This document shows, one piece after another, positions 1 through 20,625 of a stretch of 23,681 nucleotides of DNA. A program made the translations under genes and the position numbers. Within the stretch, counting starts at the first letter, position 1; every line of letters starts with the position of its first letter. Source of the stretch: Prasinococcaceae sp. CCMP 1430 (Eukaryota; Plantae; Prasinodermophyta); assembly GCA_013416795.1 (NCBI GenBank), contig RQSC01000028.1:795057-818737 (forward strand). Direction: 5' to 3'. Under the pieces are notes generated by a model. That model made no database searches and had not been told where the DNA came from. It worked only from the letters and a program-made list of their open reading frames with translations.

Positions 1-1684
1 GCGAGGCGGCCGGTCGGCGCGCGGGCGAAGCCGAGCGCCGCGCGGCGGCGGCCGAGCAGCGCGCGCTCGAGGCCGAGGCACGGCTTGCCGCCGTCGCCGC
101 CGAGAAGAAGCGCGTTGAGGGGGAGCTGGAGCGATCCACGGTGGGCCACCGCGCGGCCCTGAGCCGGGCGCTGCTGCGCGAGGCCGCGCTGGAGCGCGAC
201 GCGCAGCGCGCCGCGCTGCAGGCCGAGGCGCCGCGCGTTGGGCGCGTCAGTGTGCAGCGGCAGGGCGCGTCGCTCGTCGAGGTGTGGGAAGAGGGCACCG
301 CGCATCGCGCGCTCGAGGCGAGGACGGCGGCTCTTGCAGATGAACGTGCGGCCATCGAGCGCGCGCGCAAGGCGCTGAGGAAGCGCCACCTGCCACCCCC
401 GGCTGCCGGCGCGTCCTCCGGGGCCGCCGCGGCCGCCGCTGCGGCCGAGAAGGCCGCGAGCGGCGAGACAGCACTGCGCGACGCCGAATTCTTGGCAGCG
501 GATGCGCTGGTGACGGCGCGCCTGGAGACGCTGCGCAAGCAGGAGACCGCGCTCGCACGCGAAAAGGAGCGGCTAGAGGCAGAGAAAGTCGCGCACATTC
601 GTGAGCTGCGCCGGCAGCGCGACGAGGATGCGAGCAGGCTGGGAAGCCTTGGGCACGCCCTCGGTGCGGACCCGGCGAGCCCGCGGTACGTGCTGAACCG
701 GTTGCTCGGCAAGGGTGGCTTTTCGGAGGTTTTCAAGGCGTACGATCTCGCGAGCCTTGGCGACGTCGCGGTGAAGGTCCACCAACTCGATGCCAACTGG
801 TCCGAGGAGCGCAAGTCCTCGTACGTGCGGCACGCCGTGCGCGAGTATCACATACACAAGGCCATGGAGCATCCGAACATTTGCGAGCTGCGCGACATCT
901 TTGAGGTGGATGCAAACACATTTGCCACCGTGCTGGAGCACTGCCCCGGTGGCGATCTCGATAGCCATCTGAAGGCTTCGGCCGGTGGGGTCCTGCCCGA
1001 GCGCGAAGCGCGCGCGATTATCGTCGCGGTCTTCTCCGGGTTGCTCTACCTCGCCGACCGGGAGAAGCCCATCATCCACTACGATTTGGTACGATGCGAG
1101 CTGCCCGCTTGCGCACGCACCGCATCGATGCACAAGCACGTCCTGAGCGACCGCGCACTGCCTGGTGTGCTAATCGTCGCCCGCCCGCCCCAATCCCATG
1201 CCGTCGCCGCCACCCACAGAAACCCGGAAACATCCTCTTCAGCGCCGATGGACAGGTCAAAATCACAGACTTTGGTCTGTCAAAGATCATCGAGGACAGC
1301 AGCGCCACCAGCATGGAGCTCACCTCGCAGGGCGCGGGGACTTACTGGTACCTGCCGCCGGAGTGCTTTGACACGGCGCGCAGACCCAAAGTCTCGTCCA
1401 AGGTGGACGTGTGGTCCGCGGGCGTCATCCTGTATCAGATGCTCTTTGGCCGACGGCCTTTTGCGCACAGCATGAGCCAGGAAAGCATCCTCCGTGACGA
1501 TGCCATACGCAAGGCCGGGTCCCTCGAGTTTCCCGACACTCCAAAGGTGTCACAGGCCGCGAAGGACCTCATCACGCGATGTCTGATCCGCGACCAGACA
1601 GCTCGCCCAGACATGAAGATGGTGGTCACAGATCCTTACCTCGATTACTCAAAACTTTCGGCCTCGCAGCTGAAGAGCAAGTGA
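1..1684 (+). CDS. TLK: Tousled-like Ser/Thr kinase, 5'-truncated; exons <3..1088 and 1220..1684
   Basis: The frame is open from the window start and encodes a coiled coil. Kinase motifs: LLGKGGFSEVFKA, VAVKVHQL, HAVREY. Splicing 1088 to 1220 restores HYDL|KPGNILF, followed by ITDFGLSK and the TLK-type GAGTYWYLPPECF and SSKVDVWS. Stop TGA at 1682-1684. Confidence 0.95.
1089..1219 (+). other. Spliceosomal intron (131 nt, phase 0) in TLK
   Basis: GTACGA donor, CTAAT branch site at 1170-1174, CACAG acceptor. It joins ORFs 141..1475 and 1094..1684 inside the catalytic loop. Confidence 0.92.
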
Positions 1685-1948: not shown

Positions 1949-4911
1949 TCAGCCTTGCCACTCGTGGCCCGCGGCAGCCGCGGCAGCTTCCGCTGCGGCC
2001 AGGGCGTCTCGGGCGGCCCGCTCAGCGGCGCGCCCGCGACGCGACGCCGATCGGGACGCCGATCTGGACGCCGATCGGGACGCTTGACGCGCGACCGCGG
2101 GCGATCGTCCATTCGACATCGACGTATCAGACGACACCACCGATGGTGATAAAAGCCCGCGCTGTGTGCCGTCAGGCGTAGTGGTCTGCTGCGCTGCGAG
2201 TTCGGCGCGCAGCTTGCCTGCCTCGTCCTCCGCAGACTTCGCCCTGTCGGTGGCTGCTTGTGCGTCGCGTTGCGCGAGCTCTGCCTGGACGGTTGCGGCT
2301 TCTAGCTGAAGCCTCAAGTTGGACGCGTCCGATTCGCCCTCGGTGACCAGAGAGCGCGCTTCCTCGAGCTCTGACTTCAGCTCTGCCATCGCTTCCGCAG
2401 CTGCGGCTGCGGCTGCCTCGCGCGCTGTTTCGACACACGCAAGTTCCCTGCGGAGCAGATCAAGCTCCTCCTCCATGGCCGCGGTCGCTGCAGCGGAAGT
2501 TGCAGCCACAGCGATCATCGCGTCAGAGCTATCGTATGTGTCAGGGACAGTTCCACGCGAGCTGTCACTGTCCCAGTCGGGGCCCATGGCCTTGCCATTT
2601 GAGGCACGAGGCTCGGCTGCCTCAGCTACTCCTCCGTCGCCCGTCGCTGGGTTGATCTGGTGCTGGTGGGGGGCGCGGGGCGATTCAAAATCCGTCGCCA
2701 GCGCTACAACGTGATCGTGTGAGACAGATACGTCCTCTCCGCCGCGATCGCCCAGTTGGTCGAGGGTGCTGCGAGCGCGGTACCTCGTAGCGCGGTCGAT
2801 GACGGTTTTGAATGGCACACCTTGCTTGCGCGCGATCGCGCTGAGCTCGCTGGTTGTGCGCGCATCCTCGTCATCGCCTTCGTCGGAATCCGACGAGGAG
2901 CCTGCGAGAGCGCGATCGGTCGGCGCATCATACTCTTCCTCAATGCCGTTCGTCGCGCAGTCGTATAGGTGCTCGAAGTCTGCAAGCAGGCGCAGCGCCT
3001 CGCTGTGCTCGGCATCCACGGCGCCAACGGCCCACGCGGGCACCATCCCTTCGGCACCATCTGGCAGCCGCACGCAGGTCCATGTATCCTCGCCTTTGCT
3101 CACGTACGAGGCTCCAGTATGACCTATAGCGGTCTCGGCTTCATTAACGCCGAGTCGGCGCACGCGCTGATAGCACAGTCCGACGCTGATGGGCACTGTT
3201 CTGGAGATGGCACTGCGCTCCTTGCTTTTCCTGCGCGGCAGAGCGCCCTCGGGCGCGGGCGACACGCAGTCGGCAGGCACCTCACCGCCGAACGTCGCGC
3301 CCGCTGCGTCGCGAAGCATGACCCACTTGGGGTCGTCGGTGCTCCACATGGCGTAGAGCTGGCCAGGGAGGACCGACATCTCAGCGGCGTGCGCCGGGCT
3401 GTAGTCACCCTTGCCCACGACCCAGGTTGCGCCGTATGGCGGCGGGCCAAGCTCACCGCCCTCCTCTGAGTCGCCCTCGTCATCAGGCAGGGCGGACAAG
3501 CCGCTCAGCCGGGCGTTGTCAGCGGGATTAAAGTCCTGCAGACCGACCAGCCATTCCGATCCGCCCCCGCTCTCTTCTGCCAATGAGGAAGCAGCGGCAG
3601 GGCCGGCGGCGGCGGCTCCTCCTGACTTCGCGCCGTCTTCTCCGAGTCTACCGGGAGCGGCGTCGGTGCCACGCCCCTTTCCTGCTGTGGCAGTATCCGT
3701 CGCAGTGAAAGGCGCCACGCCGGCCACGGCCGCAGGCTGTGCTCCTTCGGGAACAGCGTCCGGAGGAGTTGCCTCGAGTGCCGCGGCAGAAATATCACCG
3801 GTACTGGTGCCAGCGTCGGAGGCCGCAATCTGCGTGCTACCTGCACGCGAGGCGACAGTCGTTGGTCTGGCGCCAGCTATCGCTCTTCCGTTCGCTCCCT
3901 CGTCGATGCTCCACACCGCCGCGCTCGCGTGTGTGAGGGACCCGCTCATCACGTGCATGGACAGCAGCGCCTGTTCAGAGCCGGAGGCGACCGAACGAAA
4001 GGCCGGGTAGATCATGAGCGGCACGCGAACGTGCGTGTGGCTGCGGCGCACTGATGCATACTGCGCGAGATCGACTTGGACCTTGGCGAAGGTACGCAGC
4101 ACACGCCGCTCCTCGTCCACTGCCTGGAGCTTGAGCTTGACGGTGACGCCCGCGAGCGCGGCGCCCGCGGGCCCCCGGCGTCGCATCTCGGACACATAAT
4201 GCAGCGACGAGCCCTCCGCGCCGAAGTCGACAAGGCCGCCCGCATCCACCACGCGCGAGGGCGTCTGCGTCGTCGCCGACGAGGAGTCCAGTCCGCGCAT
4301 TACAGCAGGAACAGGGTAGTGAGATGCAGGGGTCAGCAACGACGCCAATCATGCGCACAAATCAGTGCTGCCACTGGCAGCCGCTGACGACGGACGGGAT
4401 AGAGTGTCACGGTGAGTGTGAGCGCGAACGCGTGCATACTGATGCCGCACAATAATGCGTGCTATTGGGCGCTTCCCATCATGCCTTCCACGACACCCAA
4501 TATGCGCAGTCGGCGCCTGCCATCAAGGATGTTGGCATGCATCGCGTGATCGTGCCCGCGCGCACGGCGGCCACCAGCGGGAGCGTTCGCGAGGCGAACG
4601 CATCCGTGCGCGGTGAACGCACGGATGCGCGCTCGCCCGCGATCGAGGACGCCACGCATGCGCCCTACCGCGCGCAGGAAGTATTTCGTTCGCTGTTGGT
4701 AAATGCTAACGAATGTGACGCACCGTTTGCACGAGCGATCCTCGAGAATCGTACAGTGAGACCGCCACGCGCTGGACCCCCACGGGCGCGCCCTCGAGCG
4801 CGGCCGGCGTCAGCTGGAAGAGGAAGCGCTCGGACGAGGCCGCGCCATCGCCGCCGCCCACGCCCGCGCCGTCCCCGCCCCCCCCGTTACTGCCGCCGCC
4901 GCCGCCGCCAT
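1949..4911 (-). CDS. NT-C2 (EEIG1/EHBP1-type C2) plus SH3-like domain(s) plus C-terminal coiled-coil protein; exons ~4911..4724 and 4264..1949; start uncertain
   Basis: Exon 1 RFLFQLTPAALEGAP...VAVSLYDSRGSLVQT splices to TPSRVVDAGGLVDFG...VKLKLQAVDEERRVLRTFAKVQVDLAQYA, resembling the NT-C2 pattern. SH3-like KGDYSPAHAAEMSVLPGQ...DPKWVMLRD...GEVPADCV (~3263-3427) and a second partial WTCVRLPDGAEGMVPAWAV (~3025-3082). A heptad-rich region follows. The start is either ATG 4911 with a 1-nt error in the G8 run, or an in-frame ATG at 5119, 5068 or 5062. Confidence 0.65.
2043..2083 (+). repeat. 12-bp tandem repeat GACGCCGATCGG x3.4, encoding (ASRS)n on the minus strand
   Basis: Seen directly; it lies in the C-terminal tail of the NT-C2/SH3 ORF. 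Confidence 0.85.
4265..4723 (-). other. Spliceosomal intron (459 nt, phase 0) splitting the NT-C2 domain
   Basis: GTGCGT donor at 4723, GCTGAC branch site at 4337-4332, ACGCAG acceptor at 4265. The join is in frame. Confidence 0.7.
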
Positions 4912-5137
4912 TGCCGCCGTGCGATGGGCCGGGGCAGACGCAGCTGCGCCCCGCCGCGGCGCGCGCGCCGAGTGGGCCCCGCGGCGCGCGAATAAATCCT
5001 CGCCGGCCGAAACGAGCGATGTATTTTTGTGTGTGTCTGCACAGTACGACGTGCGTGCACATTACCATTACGTTGCCGGGCGCGCGGCCTCGGGGCGCGG
5101 CAGGCGGCGGCGCAAGCATGGCTTGGGGGGCGCGCGA

Positions 5138-8100
5138 TCACACGCCGAGCCTCGCGAGCGCCGCGGCGGCGGCCTCCTCCGGCGAGCGCTTGGGGTTGAG
5201 CGCGCCCCGGCCGAAGTGGTCCGCGATGACGGAGAAGGCCGCCTGGCCGTCAGAGGCGTTGGCGAGCTGCTGGAAGAACTTGTCGTGGTCACCCGCCTCG
5301 GCCTGCAGCGCGCGCTGCACCTCGCGCACGGTGCGGTGCGCTGGGGCGCACAGCGGGCATTCGTCCGCTTCAGCGATGCCGAAGCCGCCGCCTCCAGCGC
5401 CGCCGCCCAAACAGCGCGCGTGGTACGAGTGGCCGCACACGAAATGCGTCGCAGGCAAGTCGAGCGCGCCCTGGCAGGACGCGCAAGACGCGTTCTGAAA
5501 GATGCGCGCACGCCCGCGTAGCTCCGCCACCTCGGCGCGCATGGCGGTCGCCTCGTCGCGGTAGCGACGTGTGGCCGCAATGTCCTCCGCCGCCGCTGCC
5601 GACTGGCGCTCCAACAGGCCGCTCAGAAATGGGCGCACAGCGCCGAGAGTAATGAGCTTGTTTCCCGACAGCAGGCGCAGCGCCTCGAGCGGCGGCACCG
5701 CGCCGCTGGACTCCGCGCTGGCCAGCGCCTCCGCCGCAGCGTCCTCGCACGCTCCCGCACCTGGGCTGCCCAGGTACTGCAGAACGGCGCGCCACACTGC
5801 CGCCACGGCCGATTCCGTGGCCGACGCGGCCGACGCAGCACGCTTGGCGTAGTCAACCACCGCCTGCGGCCCGTGGTGGGGCGCTGGCGAGGCGATGATG
5901 ACCGCCAGCGCCTCGGAGAACAATCCCATGCGCTCACACAGTAGTACCGAGCCCTCGACGAATCCATGCAGACGACAGAGCACCAACGCCGCCTCGGCAT
6001 CGTACCGCGGCTTGCCACCGGGCGGCCAGCTTGAGCGAAGTAGGGTTGTCACCTTGGCGAGACGTTCCTCCGTCCTCCCGAGCCCGTCGTTTCTGCCCGT
6101 CCTACGCTCCGACTCCTTATCCGCCATTTCCTCCGCTGCGTCCTCATCGCCAGTACCGCCCAAGTAGAGCTCCAGCAAGGTGTTGTACACGGCAGGGGGT
6201 TGAGCAGGCTGATCCTCGCCGCCCTCGCCGGCGGAGGCCGCACTATTCACGACAAACTCGTAAAAGAACATGAGCGCGCGCGGCTGCTCGACGAAGAGGT
6301 GGGCAAACTCCTCCGGCGAGGCGCGCCCATCGCCTGAGCCCGTGCAGAGCGAGGCCAACGCGGCGGTGGCGGCCTCGGGCCGCGCGTCCACCAGGGCCTT
6401 GCCGTAGCGCTTCACGGCTCCCACTGCGTCCACGAGGTCGAGACGCGCGATGAAGGCAAGCGCCTCGTCGTAGTGCTCGAGGTCCTCGAGTAAGATGCGC
6501 AGCTGCCATTGGGCTTCTCCCGCAGACGCGGCGACCTGAAGCGCGTGCTCGTGATAGCCTGCGGTACTGAGCACGCCGATGGCCGTTTCGTGGTCGAAGC
6601 CAAACGGCGCACCCGGTGCGGTGGCACGGTCGACAAAGGCGCTCAGCTTCTCGGCGTCGCGCAGTTTCGTGTAGCAATTCAGCAGCAAAGTGGTGTGGTC
6701 AGGCGTGGCAAGCTCACCACCAACCTCGTGCAGGCGTTCGAGATAGGTCGTCAGAGCGTGGATGCGTTGCGCCTCGAGGTACTTTCTGATGACGTACGAT
6801 GGCGCTAGGTGGCCGATGGTCTTCTCGTACTGCGTCATGGCGCCGTCGTAGTCGCGCCGGCCATAAAGGTAGTCACCATAGCGGCGATAGACCGTCGCGG
6901 TGGCGGCTGTGGGCTCCCCCACCTCGTCGAGCGTTAGCGGCACGGCGTGCGTATACTTGTGCCGCCGGCACAAACCCTCGATGCGCGATGCGACGTCCAT
7001 CTCCTCCGAGGGTGCACGGGGCCTTGCGGGCGAGCCCGTAGGACCAGCGGCGCCGTCATGGGCATTGGCACTCCCCGCCACGATGCTCCGCGCGGGCGAG
7101 GCCGTCGCCGCCGGTGCCGGTGCCAGTCCTAGGTCGACGCCGACGAGGTTTCCCGCCGTCGGGGCGGCGGCCGTTGCGAGCGTCGAAAGAAGCGAGGCCA
7201 CCGGTGTGGCGTATGCGCCGCTCAGCGGCGCGCCCGCGGAGTCGACGGCAATCTTCCCGCCCGTCACTGGCGTCCGCCTTGCCAGCGGCGACGTAAAGAG
7301 CTGCCTCGGGCACTGGCCGAACTCGCTGATCTGTGCCTCCATGCCCGTCCGCTCCACCGGATCAGACACGGCATCCAAGTTGACGCTGCCGTCGTACGTC
7401 AGCGGATGAAAGAGGTTGTCCGCCCGCATAGCTGCCTCGCCACGCTGCTTGTGGCCGAAGATGAGGTCAATCCACTCATGCAAGTGCGCGCTCACGTGCT
7501 CACTCTCGAGAGCCTCCCTATTTTTCGCGATGAAGTCCGAGGGTGAGTCTGCCCACGGCGGCAGCACGACGTCGCCCACGGCCTCACCATTCTGCCGACG
7601 GCCGAGCGGCAGCGCCGCCGAGTTGAGCAGAAATGCGCCCGGCGCCGCTGCTCCGACGGCCGCGGTCGCACCTGAGCCTGTCGAGGGTGCCGCGGCAGCG
7701 AAAAACTCGGGCACCAGCTCCTTCAGGTCGGCGGGATTGGACAGCACGGAGCGCCAGCTCTCCGCAACCGAGCAGAAGAGTCGGTCAGGCGCATCAAAGC
7801 GACCGTTCTGAAGGCGCAGCATGTGCGCCGGCGCGCTGCGAACCATCCAGTAGAGCACGTAGCCTGGCGTGCTGTAGTGAGTGCCGTACAAATACGGCGC
7901 CGTGCGCACGCCGGGCCCGCTGCCTCGCGGCATCTGTTCCATGCGACGGCGCAATGTCGCGAGCCGCTGCTGGTTGAGCGCGCCAACTGGCTTGCTCAGG
8001 TCGCGAAAAGTCGCTTTGTTTGTCGTGTCGAGTGTGGACGATTCGTAGTCAGCGACCACCCAGGGAAACACCGGCCACTGCGACAGGTCGTTCGTCGAGC

Positions 8101-9259
8101 GCCCCGCCACCAAGTTCAGGTAGCTCAGAAAGTCGAAGTTCGAGATGGCGCCAGCACGCCACGCAGCGACGGTCCGCGTGAGCCACTGGTCCCCGCCCGC
8201 TGGGTCAAAGACTGCCGCAGCGGCTCGCGAGCCAAGTGGCGAGTCCTTGGCAAGCGCTCCCGCGGCGGCACGCTCGGCGAGCGCTGCGAGCGCCGCGGCG
8301 GCGTCCCCAGCTGAGCGGAACTCGAACAGCGCGCTCGCTCCGAATGCCTCGCCAGGCGCCGCCGTCAGGAAGTACGCTTCGAGCGCGCGCGGCCGGTGGC
8401 AGACGCGGCGCGGCGCAACAGCGCCGACGGCCCCCAGTGGGCGGCAGCGCGCCGGAGATGACTCTGCGAGATTGTGCAGCGGCTGGAAGTACATGTTTTT
8501 GTCGGTGATCACCAGGATGCCGGGCTCGCGCACGAGCGGCGTCAACTGCGCAATCACCAGGACGCGATGGCGCGCAGGCACACATGCGCATCAGAGTCAG
8601 CATTGGCATGAGCGAGCGCCCGGGCGCTCGCAACGGCGCAACGTCTACACGCGCCGCACCCCGACGCGGCGCGGTTTGCGCACCTGCACCGCGCGGCTCT
8701 GCAGCAGGATCCGCTCTGAGAACGATCGCAGCTGCGACATGTCAAAGGTCGCGGCTTCCTCGACGGCATCGGCAACGGCCGCGACGTCGGCCTCGCGCTG
8801 CGCCGGCTCGTCCTGCGCCCAAGCGTCCACCAGCGCGCGCAGCTTGCCAAGGAGCTGCGCCGGTTGCGCGTACGCGAGCGCCACGCGGTAGCGGCTTGGT
8901 GAGGAGTCGGTTTCGTACGGCGAAGCGCGCCCCTTGCCCCCACCCGCGGAGATGCGGGTGGCTCGTCGCGCGGTGAACTCGATCGCGCCATCGGCCGCCT
9001 CTTGCAGGTCGCCCACGGCGCGCAGTGACACCTTGAGAACCGCCTGCGACGGCGCGGCCGCCTCGGGCTCGAAGAAGAGGTTGTGTGTGCCCAGGCGCAC
9101 GCGCCCCTTGCAGCGCTGCGCTGCGGGCGCACCCGCGCCCGCACCCGCCCGCGTGACGTCGAGCTGCGCGATGAAGTCCGTCAGGTAGCGCTCACCCTCG
9201 TCGAGGCATAGGTAGGTGAAGCTGCGGCCCTGTGGGCGCGCAAGCGTCGACGACGCCAT
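5138..9259 (-). CDS. VPS11: FAN/NSMAF-type PH(GRAM)-BEACH module fused to the VPS11 C-terminal alpha-solenoid, RING-H2 and Vps11_C; exons 9259..8684 and 8545..5138 (~1327 aa)
   Basis: The N-terminus RSFTYLCLDEGERY...GRVRLGTHNLFFEP and LTPLVREPGILVITDKNMYFQPL resemble NSMAF. BEACH motifs: ISNFDFLSYLN, GRSTNDLSQWPVFPWV, RDLSKPVGALN, YGTHYSTPG, GRFDAPDRLF, DLKELVPEFF, LHEWIDLIFG, FGQCPRQLF. From ~7000 the VPS11 motifs are YGDYLYGRRDYDGAMTQYEKTIGHLAPSYVIRKYLEAQRIHALTTYLE, HTTLLLNCYTKL, RING-H2 CASC...CGHSYHARC...CPLC and HDKFFQQL...FSVIADHFGRG. Confidence 0.9.
8546..8683 (-). other. Spliceosomal intron (138 nt, phase 0) in the BEACH-VPS11 gene
   Basis: GTGCGC donor, GCTGAC branch site at 8601-8596, GCGCAG acceptor. 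It joins ...SRAVQ|LTPLV... Confidence 0.88.
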
Positions 9260-9413
9260 CGGCCCCGCCGGCGTGCCCACGTTCCCCCCACCCCCAACAC
9301 CTTTCCCCCCACCACCCCCACCACCCACACCCGCACCACGCGGAACCGCCGCCGCCGGCCCCGCGCCCGACGAGGACAGGGCCACCAGCAGCAAGCCCCG
9401 CCCGGCGTTCGTC

Positions 9414-10223
9414 ATGATGAGCTCGCAGTGCGACCAGGCCAAGGTGCGCCGCTCGGAGGCGCTCGGCGCGCTGCGCTTCCTGTCCAAGCCGGTGGCCGCC
9501 GCCGACCTGCAGAAGGTCTTCGCCCAGCTGGCGGCCGGCGGCATGGACACGCGCGCCGTCGCCGAGGCGGCCGCCGCGGCGGGCGTGGAGATGGTGCCCA
9601 TCAAGCGCTGCCACTCGAGCGAGGACGTGACCGTGTCGCTGCCGCTCGCCGTGTCGCGGCTGGCGCCGACGAGCGCCATCGACGCGGCGGCGCCCACCGC
9701 CGGCCGCGGCGCGTTCCACGCCTTCACGCAGCCCAAACCCGTCGTCAGCGGCCCGCCGCCCATGGGTGCGCCGCAGGCGCTCACCGCGGAGCAGGTCGCG
9801 GCGCTCGTGTGCTACCACCAGCAGCAGAGCAAGCAACGGAATCACGCGCAGCCGCAGGCGCCGGTGGGGCACCTGCAGCAGCAGCAGCAGCGCGCCGGCG
9901 CGTGCTCCACGGGCACCGCCAGCGCGAGCACGGCGCCGAGCTCGGCGTGCGCCGGCCCGTTCATGGCGCGCATCAGCTGCAACCCGGTGCCCCAGAGCCA
10001 GCGGCGCGCGGTCGCGCTCGAGAAGTACAGGCAGAAGCGCAAGACGCGCTGCTGGGACAAGAAGGTGCGCTACGAGAGCAGGCAGCGCGTGGCGGTCAAC
10101 CGCCCGCGCGTGACGGGCCGCTTCGCCAAGCGCAGCGGCTCGGACTCGGACACCACGGACGTCACGCCGGCCCCCGCCGAGGCCGCCGCCACCGCGGGGC
10201 CGGAGCCAGCAACGAAGGAGTAG
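9414..10223 (+). CDS. CCT-domain protein with the C-terminal half of a (pseudo-)receiver domain, PRR-like; true start uncertain
   Basis: CCT motif RAVALEKYRQKRKTRCWDKKVRYESRQRVAVNRPRVTGRFAKR. The N-terminal FVMMSS...GALRFLSKPVAAADLQKVFAQL matches receiver beta4-alpha4-beta5-alpha5. The first in-frame ATG is at 9414. Confidence 0.8.
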   Translation: MMSSQCDQAKVRRSEALGALRFLSKPVAAADLQKVFAQLAAGGMDTRAVAEAAAAAGVEMVPIKRCHSSEDVTVSLPLAVSRLAPTSAIDAAAPTAGRGAFHAFTQPKPVVSGPPPMGAPQALTAEQVAALVCYHQQQSKQRNHAQPQAPVGHLQQQQQRAGACSTGTASASTAPSSACAGPFMARISCNPVPQSQRRAVALEKYRQKRKTRCWDKKVRYESRQRVAVNRPRVTGRFAKRSGSDSDTTDVTPAPAEAAATAGPEPATKE

Positions 10224-14295: not shown

Positions 14296-15495
14296 ATGAG
14301 CGCGCAGGAGGCGCTCTCCGCGGGCGCGCTCCTCGCGTCGGGCACGGTCAACACGCTGCTGAACGCGCGCGTGCTCGGGCTGGGCTGCTACGCGGCCGAG
14401 AGCCTGCTGCAGACGGCGGCCAAGCTGGCCGCGCAGAGCGCCGTCGTGGGGGTGCGCGCGCTGCGCTCCCGCGGCGCGGCGCGCGCGCGCTCGCAACGTC
14501 ATCTGCCTCCGCCGCGCGAGCGGCGGCGGCGGCGGCGGCGGCGGCGCGTCATGGCGCACGCGCGCGCAACTCGTGGGCTCGGCGGTGTGCGACCTCGTTG
14601 GCTTCCTGCTGTATCAACAGGGGCTCGTGCGGTGCGGCCCGGCGCTCTATCAGGTGGCGTGCAGCGCGCAGGTGGTATTTGGCGTCGCCTTCTCGGCGGC
14701 GTTTGTCGGTGCCCGGTACTCGCTCGGGCAGCTGGTCGCAGTGGCGTGGGTCGTGGGGTCAATCGCAGCTAGGGGCGCGCTCGCGGCGAGAAAGGCGGGC
14801 GCTGCGGACGAGGGCGACGCTGGGGCAGTCACTTTCGGCATCCTCATGGTGCTGCTCGGCTGCGCGGTCTATTCGGCCGGGGCGGTGCTCGTAACGCGCA
14901 TGAACAGGGACTGCGTGCGAGCCGGGGAGACGCCGCCCAGCGGGTCCGACGTGTCTGCGGCGAATGGCGTCGTAGGCCTTTGCTTCATTCTCGTGTACCT
15001 CGCGGCCTACACCGTGCCCCGCTGGACTGAGCTCGTGACCGACGTCCAGGCAGCGTCCGGCGTGACCCCATGGGAGGTGCTGAGCACCCACGCCATCTAC
15101 CTGGCGTGCTACGTCGTGCACAACGCGGTGAGTGCGCGCGCGACCGCGCGCACGCACGCGATTGTGCGTGCGCGCACGTGTGCGCCTGCGTGTGTGCGTC
15201 CTCCTGACTCGCACACCCGCCCTGTGCCGGCGATTGCACGTGCGTGCAGAACTATTGGAACTGCGTCGCGAGCGCCGGCGTCACGACCGCACAGTGCGCG
15301 AACGCCGTCCGCACTGTTTCCGTCGCCCTCGTCTCCGCCGCGGTCATGTGCCGCGGCGACACGCCTGCGGAGTGCCTGGACGCCGGATCGATGGCGTGCG
15401 CTCTGGCGACAGCAGGTGGCGGCGCGATGTACGCGCTCGCGACCTCCCGCGCGAGCGCGACCAAGGCCACGCTCGTCGCGAAGAAGGAAAAGTAG
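14296..15495 (+). CDS. DMT-superfamily transporter, SLC35F6/nucleotide-sugar-transporter-like; intron 15128..15249; apparent frameshift at the (GC)n run ~14479-14490
   Basis: N-terminal LLASGTVNTLL resembles SLC35F6 LVTGSINTL. Multiple hydrophobic helices follow, including LYQVACSAQVVFGVAFS...RYSLGQL. A GTGAGT...CCTGAC...GTGCAG intron joins HNA|NYWNCV, followed by AVRTVSVALVS. Stop TAG at 15493-15495. Confidence 0.65.
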
Positions 15496-15669
15496 CAGGG
15501 CACGCCCCAGCCACCAGCAGAACGCGTGAAATCAAGAGACGCAACGGCCCAACGCACATACGCGCACGCAAGCGCGCGCACGCGCACGCGCACGCGCGTG
15601 CCCACGTGCATATCTCGCAATGATAATACAGGCATGATACACACTCTGCGCGCGAGGGCGCCGGCATTC

Positions 15670-17985
15670 TCAACGGCCGCCCACGCCCGCCGCGCTGACG
15701 GCGGCCATGGCAGCGATGACACCGAGGTCTGTGCGCGCGCGGAGTGCTCGGAGGGCGCTCGGATCGACTGTGGCGGGTGCGTCGAGCGTTGCCGCTGTCG
15801 CCACGGCCTCCTCGTCGGCGGCAGCCTCGTCGGCGGCACGCATGGCCGCGGCGCGCAGCGAGAGGATGGCGGAGCGCACGTCGCGCCCGTCCTCGCCTTG
15901 GGAAGTGGCTGGCTGGCGCTGCTCTTTGTCGGCGTCTGTCGTTGCTGCCATTTGTTGTTGTTGCGCTGCACCGTTTGGCACGCGGTCTGGCGAGCCCGGA
16001 GAGCGGCAGCGCTTGCGCGAGATAGCAGCCGCATCGATGTCGCCCACGTGCTGGAGTACGCGCGCCGCACCTGGGCTGTACGCCGCAGCGCCCCACCGGG
16101 CGCGAGCCCGCTCGGCCGCCCCCCGCCAGCCAATTGCGGCGATAGGATCTGCGCACGCACCCTGGGGAGCGCTGTCCGCGGCGCAGATGTACACCTCGTA
16201 CCTGTACGCGCCCTCGCCCAGCTCGTCGCCCGCCGCGCGCTCCGCAGCCACCTCGGCTCGCCAATCGTCGATGACGGCGTGCAGATCCGCTTTGGCGTGG
16301 GGCGCAAGGTCGTGGACGACGTTTCCTGACGCAGAGACGAGGTCGATCTCTTCCCCGTCGAGGTCCGAGGCGGGCGCAAGCATCAGCAAGCGCACGTCAC
16401 GTAGCGCGCGGGCTGCGGCGACGACCCGGGCGCGTACGACAATCCTCCCGTCGGCGCCGCGGGTGGCGATGACGTCGGCGCGGACGCGGTGCTCCTCCGT
16501 CAGCTGCTGTCGTGCGACGTCGTCTCCGCTCGCGCTGTCCTTGCTCGCCTCGCCTGACTGCGGCGAGCCCCCTTTTTCAGCATCTGCACCGACATGTTCG
16601 CCGCTTCGCTCACCGTCGCACATGGACGCGAGCAACGACGCGGCGTCGGCAAGCATGGCCTTCTTCGCCGCCGCCTGCTTCTCGCCCTCCCAGAGCTCCC
16701 GCGTGAGCTCCTCCCTTCGCTCTTCGAGCGCAGCGGAAAAGAGGGCCTCGCCGGCCGCGGCACGCGCGGCGGCAGCGCTAACCCCGGTGCCGCCCACGCC
16801 GACACTGGCGCCGCCGGGCTGCGGGCCACGCGCGCCAGTCAGGTCGACGAGCGTGACCGCCGGCAGAGCCTCGTCCTGGGAGCGCGCCTCGCCCTTCGCA
16901 CCCCTGAGCACAAGCAATTGCTGCGTGCCGTCACCCGCGGGCGCCCTGAAGTCGCCTGGGAGCAGGGCCGCCACGCGTTCGCCGAGCGCCATCAGCGGCA
17001 CCAGCGCCTCCGCGCAGTAGAGCGTCGCCGTCGAGTGCATGTCGTCGTGCGCGGCGGCGACCACACGCGCCCTGCCGCCCAGCAGCGCCGCCGCGAGCGA
17101 AGCGGGGCGCGGCACTGACCCCGGTCGCGCGCGTGCGAGCTCGCGTCCAGCGCCGTAGCGCGTGACAGCATTGCCCTCGCCGTCCGCGATGACCACTTCC
17201 ATCGTGTCCGCGCCGGGACCCGCCCCTGCGCGCGGCGGCAGGACGCACGCCACGGCGCCCTCTGCGGTAGCGGCAGCTGCGAGGCCGTCGCCGCCGACTG
17301 CGAGCGCGGCGCGCCGCCAGCACGCATCATCACCGCCCTCGTTGAGGACGACCGCAGCGATCGGAACGGCGAGCGCTCCTGGCGTAGCGCCGGCGCTGCG
17401 AGCGCGCGTGGCTACGAGCGCCACGGGCGGGGCACCTGTGCACCCGCCGCCCGCGCAGAGCACGCGCGCGCCGCGCCCAAGCTGCACTACGAACGACTGC
17501 CAGCGACCGCGCGCGCCGCGCGCGATGACCAGGAGGGACACGGACGCGTCCGCATCCGTCTCGCCCGCCTCGTCCCCTTTCGCCTCGTGACCGCCCTCGA
17601 ACACGACGGCGGCCGCTGGCCCATCGAGCACGAACGCCCTCACCGCACGCGCCCCTGGCGGGGCTGCGGCGATCGCGACTGACTCCCAGCGCACGCCGCC
17701 GCATCGCGCGTCGTCGGAGCGCGCTTCGGCGCGCACGGCGCCCAGGACGAGCTCTCCGGTGCGCTTGTCGAGCGCAACGCCGTACGGCGCCTCCACCCAG
17801 CTCTGGCCGTCCTCGACGACGGCCGCCGCGAGCAGCGACAAACTCTCCGGGCACACGCGCGCTCCGTACTCGGGGCGGCCGCCGCTCACCTCAACCAGCG
17901 ACTCCGACGCCTCACTCACGCACGCCGCCACGCCCGTCCGCGCGTCCACGACGCGCGCTCCGCCGGCGTGCACGAAGCGCGCCAT
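15670..17985 (-). CDS. FANCB: FANCB-like protein (771 aa), starting at the ATG in the repeat spacer (MARFVHAGG...)
   Basis: FVLDGP (FANCB RVLNGP as recalled), LLPGDFRAPAGDGTQQLLVL (FANCB LIDDFIGSGTEQVLLL) and VTLVDL (FKITDL), then a coiled coil and a beta-rich segment. This matches the propeller, coiled-coil, beta-sandwich order of FANCB/FAAP100. Confidence 0.6.
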   Translation of the reverse strand: MARFVHAGGARVVDARTGVAACVSEASESLVEVSGGRPEYGARVCPESLSLLAAAVVEDGQSWVEAPYGVALDKRTGELVLGAVRAEARSDDARCGGVRWESVAIAAAPPGARAVRAFVLDGPAAAVVFEGGHEAKGDEAGETDADASVSLLVIARGARGRWQSFVVQLGRGARVLCAGGGCTGAPPVALVATRARSAGATPGALAVPIAAVVLNEGGDDACWRRAALAVGGDGLAAAATAEGAVACVLPPRAGAGPGADTMEVVIADGEGNAVTRYGAGRELARARPGSVPRPASLAAALLGGRARVVAAAHDDMHSTATLYCAEALVPLMALGERVAALLPGDFRAPAGDGTQQLLVLRGAKGEARSQDEALPAVTLVDLTGARGPQPGGASVGVGGTGVSAAAARAAAGEALFSAALEERREELTRELWEGEKQAAAKKAMLADAASLLASMCDGERSGEHVGADAEKGGSPQSGEASKDSASGDDVARQQLTEEHRVRADVIATRGADGRIVVRARVVAAARALRDVRLLMLAPASDLDGEEIDLVSASGNVVHDLAPHAKADLHAVIDDWRAEVAAERAAGDELGEGAYRYEVYICAADSAPQGACADPIAAIGWRGAAERARARWGAAAYSPGAARVLQHVGDIDAAAISRKRCRSPGSPDRVPNGAAQQQQMAATTDADKEQRQPATSQGEDGRDVRSAILSLRAAAMRAADEAAADEEAVATAATLDAPATVDPSALRALRARTDLGVIAAMAAVSAAGVGGR

Positions 17986-18000
17986 GCGCTCGCTCGCAAC

Positions 18001-20260
18001 GGCGGCGTGCGTGAGTGAGGCGTCGGAGTCGCTGGTTGAGGTGAGCGGCGGCCGCCCCGAGTACGGAGCGCGCGTGTGCCCGGAGAGTTTGTCGCTGCTC
18101 GCGGCGGCCGTCGTCGAGGACGGCCAGAGCTGGGTGGAGGCGCCGTACGGCGTTGCGCTCGACAAGCGCACCGGAGAGCTCGTCCTGGGCGCCGTGCGCG
18201 CCGAAGCGCGCTCCGACGACGCGCGATGCGGCGGCGTGCGCTGGGAGTCAGTCGCGATCGCCGCAGCCCCGCCAGGGGCGCGTGCGGTGAGGGCGTTCGT
18301 GCTCGATGGGCCAGCGGCCGCCGTCGTGTTCGAGGGCGGTCACGAGGCGAAAGGGGACGAGGCGGGCGAGACGGATGCGGACGCGTCCGTGTCCCTCCTG
18401 GTCATCGCGCGCGGCGCGCGCGGTCGCTGGCAGTCGTTCGTAGTGCAGCTTGGGCGCGGCGCGCGCGTGCTCTGCGCGGGCGGCGGGTGCACAGGTGCCC
18501 CGCCCGTGGCGCTCGTAGCCACGCGCGCTCGCAGCGCCGGCGCTACGCCAGGAGCGCTCGCCGTTCCGATCGCTGCGGTCGTCCTCAACGAGGGCGGTGA
18601 TGATGCGTGCTGGCGGCGCGCCGCGCTCGCAGTCGGCGGCGACGGCCTCGCAGCTGCCGCTACCGCAGAGGGCGCCGTGGCGTGCGTCCTGCCGCCGCGC
18701 GCAGGGGCGGGTCCCGGCGCGGACACGATGGAAGTGGTCATCGCGGACGGCGAGGGCAATGCTGTCACGCGCTACGGCGCTGGACGCGAGCTCGCACGCG
18801 CGCGACCGGGGTCAGTGCCGCGCCCCGCTTCGCTCGCGGCGGCGCTGCTGGGCGGCAGGGCGCGTGTGGTCGCCGCCGCGCACGACGACATGCACTCGAC
18901 GGCGACGCTCTACTGCGCGGAGGCGCTGGTGCCGCTGATGGCGCTCGGCGAACGCGTGGCGGCCCTGCTCCCAGGCGACTTCAGGGCGCCCGCGGGTGAC
19001 GGCACGCAGCAATTGCTTGTGCTCAGGGGTGCGAAGGGCGAGGCGCGCTCCCAGGACGAGGCTCTGCCGGCGGTCACGCTCGTCGACCTGACTGGCGCGC
19101 GTGGCCCGCAGCCCGGCGGCGCCAGTGTCGGCGTGGGCGGCACCGGGGTTAGCGCTGCCGCCGCGCGTGCCGCGGCCGGCGAGGCCCTCTTTTCCGCTGC
19201 GCTCGAAGAGCGAAGGGAGGAGCTCACGCGGGAGCTCTGGGAGGGCGAGAAGCAGGCGGCGGCGAAGAAGGCCATGCTTGCCGACGCCGCGTCGTTGCTC
19301 GCGTCCATGTGCGACGGTGAGCGAAGCGGCGAACATGTCGGTGCAGATGCTGAAAAAGGGGGCTCGCCGCAGTCAGGCGAGGCGAGCAAGGACAGCGCGA
19401 GCGGAGACGACGTCGCACGACAGCAGCTGACGGAGGAGCACCGCGTCCGCGCCGACGTCATCGCCACCCGCGGCGCCGACGGGAGGATTGTCGTACGCGC
19501 CCGGGTCGTCGCCGCAGCCCGCGCGCTACGTGACGTGCGCTTGCTGATGCTTGCGCCCGCCTCGGACCTCGACGGGGAAGAGATCGACCTCGTCTCTGCG
19601 TCAGGAAACGTCGTCCACGACCTTGCGCCCCACGCCAAAGCGGATCTGCACGCCGTCATCGACGATTGGCGAGCCGAGGTGGCTGCGGAGCGCGCGGCGG
19701 GCGACGAGCTGGGCGAGGGCGCGTACAGGTACGAGGTGTACATCTGCGCCGCGGACAGCGCTCCCCAGGGTGCGTGCGCAGATCCTATCGCCGCAATTGG
19801 CTGGCGGGGGGCGGCCGAGCGGGCTCGCGCCCGGTGGGGCGCTGCGGCGTACAGCCCAGGTGCGGCGCGCGTACTCCAGCACGTGGGCGACATCGATGCG
19901 GCTGCTATCTCGCGCAAGCGCTGCCGCTCTCCGGGCTCGCCAGACCGCGTGCCAAACGGTGCAGCGCAACAACAACAAATGGCAGCAACGACAGACGCCG
20001 ACAAAGAGCAGCGCCAGCCAGCCACTTCCCAAGGCGAGGACGGGCGCGACGTGCGCTCCGCCATCCTCTCGCTGCGCGCCGCGGCCATGCGTGCCGCCGA
20101 CGAGGCTGCCGCCGACGAGGAGGCCGTGGCGACAGCGGCAACGCTCGACGCACCCGCCACAGTCGATCCGAGCGCCCTCCGAGCACTCCGCGCGCGCACA
20201 GACCTCGGTGTCATCGCTGCCATGGCCGCCGTCAGCGCGGCGGGCGTGGGCGGCCGTTGA
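18001..20260 (+). pseudogene. 5'-truncated inverted copy of the FANCB-like gene (right arm), probably an assembly fold-back artefact
   Basis: Identical to the left copy but lacks the first ~19 codons, including the ATG, which exist only in the spacer on the minus strand. Confidence 0.75.
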
Positions 20261-20625
20261 GAATGCCGGCGCCCTCGCGCGCAGAGTGTGTATCATGCCT
20301 GTATTATCATTGCGAGATATGCACGTGGGCACGCGCGTGCGCGTGCGCGTGCGCGCGCTTGCGTGCGCGTATGTGCGTTGGGCCGTTGCGTCTCTTGATT
20401 TCACGCGTTCTGCTGGTGGCTGGGGCGTGCCCTGCTACTTTTCCTTCTTCGCGACGAGCGTGGCCTTGGTCGCGCTCGCGCGGGAGGTCGCGAGCGCGTA
20501 CATCGCGCCGCCACCTGCTGTCGCCAGAGCGCACGCCATCGATCCGGCGTCCAGGCACTCCGCAGGCGTGTCGCCGCGGCACATGACCGCGGCGGAGACG
20601 AGGGCGACGGAAACAGTGCGGACGG

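Follow-up and report, generated by a model that had tools for sequence, protein, structure and literature searches.

A transcribed Prasinoderma gene joins a FAN-type PH-BEACH module to the solenoid and RING finger of VPS11

What is encoded by a gene that begins as one endolysosomal protein and ends as another? Such a gene lies on the minus strand at positions 5138-9259 of a 23,681-nucleotide (nt) stretch of DNA (contig RQSC01000028.1, positions 795,057 to 818,737; hereafter the window, meaning the whole stretch analysed) assigned to Prasinococcaceae sp. CCMP 1430. Its reading frame runs from the PH and BEACH domains of FAN/NSMAF into the helical repeat, RING-H2 finger and C-terminal domain of VPS11, and the propellers of both families are absent. 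BEACH-domain proteins (LYST, LRBA, NBEAL2, FAN) regulate endolysosomal organelles by a molecular mode of action that is still unclear and are linked to disease, the smallest being FAN/NSMAF (LvsF in Dictyostelium), and the homotypic fusion and vacuole protein sorting (HOPS) and class C core vacuole/endosome tethering (CORVET) complexes are the central tethers of the endolysosomal system. The evidence below identifies one real, transcribed gene of Prasinoderma coloniale that is maintained by selection. We propose, with a probability of roughly 0.6, that its product is the VPS11 subunit of the class C core of HOPS and/or CORVET carrying a FAN PH-BEACH module, and hence a Rosetta-stone fusion.

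The gene consists of two exons (9259-8684 and 8545-5138) separated by a 138-nt GT-AG intron, and its product has 1327 residues:

5138-9259, minus strand: whole coding region of the fusion gene (PRCOL_00006472, 1327 residues), from the open reading frame (ORF), Pfam matches, transcript contigs and the deposited protein
8684-9259, minus strand: exon 1, residues 1-192, ATG at 9259; transcript joint at 8684, translation equal to the N-terminus of the deposited protein
8546-8683, minus strand: 138-nt GT-AG intron, skipped in two transcript assemblies, splice-site sequence read
5138-8545, minus strand: exon 2, residues 193-1327, stop codon 5138-5140, unbroken across both halves in the ORF and in transcript contigs

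An earlier reading of the letters alone (the sequence-only reading) had proposed one uninterrupted exon from 8545 to 5138, and 8545 is the exact splice acceptor in the transcript contigs. On the minus strand the corresponding ORF is 1147 residues long (5138-8581), in a window of 70% guanine plus cytosine (GC). Contigs from two public runs, compared over 5000-9900, both jump 8546-8683, and as the skipped segment reads GT..AG on the minus strand, both runs are taken to be RNA-derived. The frame is kept over the intron, with exon 1 closing on a full codon and exon 2 opening at codon position 1. A spliced transcript contig of 3966 nt matches 5125-8545 plus 8684-9228, and a second transcript contig matches 5477-7903, each with 0 differences and each unbroken through the linker between the two halves (7004-7288); a DNA contig from a further run spans 5000-9366. 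The deposited protein P0088 (1327 residues) is identical to the spliced model and corresponds to UniRef100_A0A7R9TPT2, "RING-type domain-containing protein", and to EukProt PRCOL_00006472-RA of Prasinoderma coloniale.

The gene recurs in independent material. The same ORF is found on independent TARA Oceans metagenome scaffolds and on further contigs from ENA and Logan. Wild metagenome and Logan assemblies also yield 11 variants of the protein, a few substitutions apart and all with the frame intact; the wild substitutions cluster in the linker, and no frameshift is seen. The fusion also extends to a relative. The relative's protein (P0002, 1290 residues, metagenome contig L001, GC 68%) falls in its own cluster at 90% identity, matches the fusion protein of the window at 79% over 1129 residues, has the same architecture and shares the junction motif SPARPRAPSEEMDVASR. 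Codon comparison between the two genes, computed exon by exon, gives a synonymous divergence (dS) of about 1, and ratios of nonsynonymous to synonymous divergence (dN/dS) of 0.10 for the BEACH domain, 0.11 for the solenoid and 0.13 for the RING plus C-terminus. The whole linker, by comparison, is 52% identical between the two lineages and has a dN/dS of 0.37 against about 0.1 in the domains. The relative lacks the 138-nt intron at the corresponding codon and reads straight through RAVQLTPL. The 5′ structure of the relative's gene seems to be different as well, the first 26 called residues being unmatched.

From the N-terminus, the protein comprises the N-terminal PH domain of FAN, the PH of PH-BEACH, the BEACH domain, a 95-residue linker, the VPS11 α-solenoid, RING-H2 and VPS11_C. 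The boundaries and the support for each are given below, where models are those of AlphaFold2 (AF2), with confidence given as the predicted local distance difference test (pLDDT):

8807-9232, minus strand: PH_FAN (PF25400), the FAN N-terminal PH domain; Pfam E 7e-11, β-sandwich plus helix in the model over residues 25-147
8264-8545, minus strand, with the first 9 residues in exon 1 (8684-8710): second PH-like domain, the PH of PH-BEACH, residues 184-286; β-sandwich plus helix in the model, contiguous alignment with Marchantia FAN
7280-8164, minus strand: BEACH domain, residues 320-614; Pfam Beach E 8e-103, neurobeachin structure 1mi1 (PDB) E 9e-81, dN/dS 0.10
7166-7204, minus strand: conserved post-BEACH helix inside the linker, residues 640-652, motif ATPVASLL; helix in the model, mean pLDDT about 87 for the block 641-650, kept in both lineages
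7004-7165, minus strand: Ala/Pro/Gly-rich junction linker, residues 653-706; predicted disordered from residue 657 (pLDDT < 50 over 657-720 of the model)
5513-7003, minus strand: VPS11 α-solenoid plus long C-terminal helix, residues 707-1203; Pfam TPR_PEP5_VPS11 (PF23356) E 5e-47, alignment with Musa VPS11 335-945, model pLDDT 85, Foldseek matches 7zu0_A and 8qx8_A, dN/dS 0.11
5348-5485, minus strand: RING-H2 finger, residues 1213-1258, eight Zn ligands, 10-residue Gly-rich insert in the second loop; ligand pattern, comparison with Musa and Sphagnum, weak Pfam zf-C3H2C3 match
5195-5338, minus strand: VPS11_C (PF12451), residues 1262-1309; Pfam E 2e-9, PDB chain 7zu0_A (PEP5) E 1.5e-10

Pfam matches, the ligand pattern and the alignments agree with the sequence-only reading that a complete FAN-type BEACH domain, the VPS11 helical repeat, RING-H2 and Vps11_C stand in one frame. 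In the FAN half, the Pfam Beach match spans residues 140-434 of the 1147-residue ORF, and the PH_FAN match sits in the ORF upstream of it. Residues 12-611 of P0088 align with residues 11-603 of Marchantia FAN at 47% identity; there the alignment stops, and the Marchantia protein runs on to residue 1142 as WD40 repeats. The AF2 model of the N-terminal half, built with alignments, has a predicted template modelling score of 0.80 and contains two PH-like sandwiches, the BEACH domain and the helix at 640-652. The solved structures matched by sequence are the PH-BEACH modules of neurobeachin and LRBA and, for the other half, yeast PEP5/Vps11 of HOPS. With FAN/NSMAF the fusion shares the N-terminal PH_FAN domain, the PH-BEACH pair and the post-BEACH helix; it differs in that the C-terminal WD40 propeller (about 400-540 residues in plant and algal FAN) is absent, and the VPS11 solenoid and RING stand there instead.

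The junction itself was described beforehand as an Ala/Pro linker of about 95 residues at roughly 7285-7004, a close estimate, as the linker measures exactly 95 residues (612-706 of P0088, window 7288-7004) with 25 Ala, 12 Pro and 11 Gly. The predicted opening of the VPS11 part at EMDVASRIEGL is likewise borne out, since this motif aligns to residue 335 of Musa VPS11, a position just after the canonical propeller. Residues 707-1314 of P0088 are 39% identical to Musa VPS11 335-945, residues 1-334 of the Musa protein being the propeller. The TPR_PEP5_VPS11 match (E 5e-47) occupies residues 573-889 of the 1147-residue ORF and the VPS11_C match residues 1082-1129. In the AF2 model of the VPS11 half (mean pLDDT 85), an all-helical solenoid is followed by a 45-residue helix, the RING and C-terminal helices, and Foldseek matches this model best to yeast Vps11, both the HOPS chain 7zu0_A (E 7e-13) and the CORVET chain 8qx8_A, and then to Vps18. 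The zf-C3H2C3 match at residues 1033-1057 of the ORF scores 23.9 bits, under the Pfam cutoff of 27 bits, and the RING assignment therefore rests on the ligand pattern C-x2-C...C-x-H-x2-H-x2-C...C-x2-C, which is intact.

Both propellers are missing, as the sequence-only reading had stated. Pfam gives no WD40 match and no match to the VPS11 N-terminal propeller (PF23341, PEP5_VPS11_N, or PF23266, VPS11_N) in the fusion. Searches by tblastn with FAN C-termini and WD40 regions found nothing in the window or in the relative's contig, and those with VPS11 N-termini and propellers found no remnant in either. Compared with VPS11/PEP5 (7ZU0 chain A, 8QX8 chain A), the fusion has the PF23356 solenoid, the long C-terminal helix, the eight-ligand RING-H2 and VPS11_C; it differs in lacking the propeller (about 335 residues), with the FAN PH-PH-BEACH array plus linker in its place, in the 10-residue Gly-rich insert of its RING and in its long stem branch. 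The second-loop insert (GGGAGGGGFG..., 10 residues, P0088 1238-1252) is common to both Prasinoderma-level lineages and absent from plant VPS11.

How widespread is this architecture? An exhaustive phmmer (HMMER) scan of 1.84 billion representatives of 50%-identity clusters returned the fusion's own cluster at 2541 bits, followed by matches at 488 bits (Cymbomonas FAN, BEACH half only) and 446 bits (canonical VPS11 only), and among the 150 matches listed no other protein covers both halves. A distant fusion would outscore either half alone. The architecture is accordingly confined to one of these clusters and not widely catalogued. As judged from the sequences searched, the fusion is shared by P. 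coloniale and a relative at dS about 1, and was found in no other lineage. The suggestion that it might be undescribed holds in part: no paper was found that combines Prasinoderma with VPS11 or CORVET or that describes the fusion, and the supplements of the P. coloniale genome paper mention neither VPS11, BEACH nor the gene id, but the protein is already an unnamed entry of UniProt and EukProt. What is new is thus a lineage-restricted architecture built from two well-known families, its sequence having been deposited without a name.

A word search with the VPS11 half found 174 VPS11 relatives, as far afield as Anaeramoeba, with Sphagnum VPS11 the best match (42%). All but one (a partial Volvox entry) of the 120 matches listed outside the two fusion clusters carry PF23341, and no second Prasinoderma VPS11 is among these 120 of 174, although a Prasinoderma proteome is in the database. 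In a quick maximum-likelihood tree the VPS11 half branches inside Viridiplantae VPS11 (Shimodaira-Hasegawa-like approximate likelihood ratio 99) on a long stem of 1.37 changes per column. Its likeness to plant VPS11, at 39-42% identity from residue 335 to the end, goes together with this position inside the green-plant proteins, and both placement and stem are as expected for an orthologue from a deep-branching green lineage that changed fast after fusion. Three high-GC VPS11 matches (P0083, P0131 and P0351) were considered as a second Prasinoderma copy and rejected, one of their contigs having 78% GC and the others coming from other Joint Genome Institute (JGI) samples. Of five short VPS11 matches considered as natural propeller-less forms, four were rejected as fragments cut short at the N-terminus, each still ending in propeller sequence; P0310 (714 residues), the remaining one, has no propeller match. 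A separate 111.6-kb contig (L002, ENA ERZ27247687) holds a canonical VPS11 from an uncultured photosynthetic eukaryote in a stretch read at 78% GC, adjoined by violaxanthin de-epoxidase and globin genes; the branch of this protein in the VPS11 tree is very long. The idea that a single deletion joined FAN and VPS11 genes once arranged in tandem is unsupported; in two other picoalgal contigs the two genes are not adjacent and share no synteny.

What might such a protein do? In yeast HOPS, the Vps11 and Vps18 solenoids pair antiparallel, and the C-terminal helix and RING of Vps11 anchor Vps39 (PMC9592082). Judged by its domains, the VPS11 half would keep all that yeast Vps11 needs for antiparallel pairing with Vps18 and for anchoring Vps39/Vps3 through the C-terminal helix and RING, and the protein would most likely take the VPS11 position in the class C core of CORVET, HOPS or both. 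Removal of the Vps11 propeller (residues 1-335) in yeast leaves both complexes able to form hexamers (PMC9592082, PMC11187117), and CORVET with Vps11 minus these residues purifies like the wild type and still tethers, the propeller normally bracing Vps8 (PMC11187117). The truncation point of this yeast Vps11-ΔN matches the start of the VPS11 part of the fusion (Musa residue 335). Yeast Vps11-ΔN is, however, a laboratory deletion with nothing added, and its HOPS mutant fails in fusion assays, whereas the algal protein is natural and carries another globular module on a flexible linker. That tether would put the FAN-type PH-BEACH module at the distal tip, the usual seat of the VPS11 propeller (the Vps8 brace in CORVET), where the module may recognise membrane or cargo on endosomes. 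On this view the gene would hard-wire a partnership that elsewhere is formed by two independent proteins.

Work on other organisms is consistent with this proposal. Human NSMAF colocalises strongly with RAB5A and is termed an early/sorting endosomal protein (PMC11554844). Two further papers cite a BEACH protein as a partner of TgVps11 and a member of the PfVps16 interactome (PMC12306165, PMC12011295); as cited there, Toxoplasma gondii BDCP (TGME49_263000) and its Plasmodium homologue resemble the fusion in that a BEACH protein is physically tied to the class C Vps core, and differ in that the partners are separate polypeptides of a distant lineage. What the sequence-only reading suggested, namely a HOPS/CORVET scaffold equipped with a targeting module and pointing to a link between BEACH proteins and class C Vps complexes, is plausible and fits this literature. 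Its claim that the PH-BEACH module "replaces" the VPS11 propeller stands as far as position is concerned, since the module occupies the place of the propeller; the accompanying assumption of a sole VPS11 is at most suggested by the lack of a second copy among the 120 listed matches. A bolder version holds that Prasinoderma has no VPS11 and no FAN besides the fusion, and that the fusion records a general, hitherto unrecognised partnership, in which FAN-type PH-BEACH docks on the VPS11-VPS18 core of CORVET/HOPS, at the distal end where the propeller lies, and gives this core membrane or cargo specificity on Rab5-type endosomes; this we regard as possible, if rather doubtful.

Several points weigh against the proposal that the fusion serves as a VPS11 core subunit. 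Yeast HOPS without the Vps11 propeller tethers and drives no fusion (PMC9592082), so that a cell whose only VPS11 lacks the propeller would have to compensate for the loss. The function of the VPS11 half may have shifted, given its long stem branch. A word search based on the VPS11 propeller (length window 330-1050 residues) is insensitive, returning 10 VPS11 proteins in all. The Toxoplasma BEACH protein may be of another type than FAN. A single polypeptide of ~140 kDa and its binding to VPS18, VPS16 or VPS33 are predictions from DNA and transcripts. The contigs are silent on transcript starts and ends, so an internal transcription start is possible. The first three of these points suit an accessory paralogue: a canonical VPS11, and perhaps a FAN, would be encoded elsewhere, and the fusion would be an extra, alternative or regulatory core subunit of a specialised HOPS/CORVET-like complex, or a competitor for VPS18. 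The long stem fits changed function after duplication, the requirement of yeast HOPS for the propeller in fusion favours a canonical copy, and the genome search was not exhaustive. We nevertheless consider this explanation somewhat unlikely, as no second Prasinoderma protein is among the 120 matches listed of 174, the VPS11 half branches where the species tree predicts the orthologue, and its dN/dS of 0.11 indicates a constraint as strong as that on BEACH.

The silence of the contigs on transcript starts, together with the predicted disorder of the linker and a conserved Met at the start of the VPS11 part (SEEMDVAS), could also be accommodated by one gene giving two proteins, with separate FAN-like and VPS11-ΔN products arising from an internal promoter or start near the linker or from linker proteolysis. 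The Met is not special, because canonical VPS11 has one beside the same position; moreover, both lineages and 11 of 11 wild variants retain an open frame through 95 weakly conserved codons, and the linker is of equal length within a few residues at a dN/dS of 0.37, which makes two products improbable. An artefact or dead gene, i.e. a misassembly or read-through of two neighbours or a decaying non-functional chimera, draws on the ease with which long open frames, many of them overlapping, arise by chance at 70% GC. The same junction is present, however, in spliced RNA contigs, in the culture DNA contig, in TARA scaffolds and in the 79%-identical relative, no propeller-coding DNA lies between or around the halves, and both halves are under strong purifying selection. 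Spliced transcripts and independent DNA assemblies across 7004-7288 thus dispose of the misassembly that the sequence-only reading had considered, and since the same ORF occurs in the wild, the relative shares the fusion and dN/dS is low, we reject misassembly, read-through and pseudogene alike, the residual chance being minute.

A selected natural joining of FAN PH-BEACH to the assembly half of VPS11 constitutes classic Rosetta-stone evidence for a functional link. Such a link would agree with the scattered hints from other organisms, namely the Toxoplasma/Plasmodium BEACH protein cited from Vps11/Vps16 interactomes, and NSMAF on RAB5 endosomes. The testable hypothesis that follows is that FAN and CORVET/HOPS make contact at the N-terminal end of VPS11, and the gene may also be viewed as a natural experiment in which the VPS11 propeller is dispensable or exchangeable. 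Should the fusion prove to be the sole VPS11 and FAN, and the docking general, it would provide a concrete partner and site of action for the enigmatic BEACH domain across eukaryotes. The reach of the argument is that of one obscure algal lineage, known from DNA and transcripts alone, in which a canonical VPS11 may coexist.

The surroundings of the gene differ between the two lineages. A protein-kinase gene about 80% identical in the two adjoins the fusion on opposite sides (window 123-1675, plus strand; L001 800-2230, minus strand), and the 799-residue ORF of the window (1949-4348) and its CCT-motif gene are absent from L001; the neighbourhood has therefore been rearranged around a conserved fusion gene. 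The 799-residue ORF (minus strand) has no Pfam family and lies directly downstream of the fusion in TARA contigs too, as a called gene of 782 residues. Further along the window is a perfect (100%) 2625-nt inverted repeat (15305-17929 and 18001-20625, 71-nt spacer) with mirrored 833-residue ORFs that have no Pfam match, and this structure (15305-20625) may be either a real palindrome or a long-read hairpin or assembly artefact. The CCT-motif gene (9216-10223, plus strand) is arranged head-to-head with the fusion gene, ~90 nt separating the fusion ATG (9259) from the first transcript contig of this neighbour (9346), and marine metatranscriptome contigs cover it.

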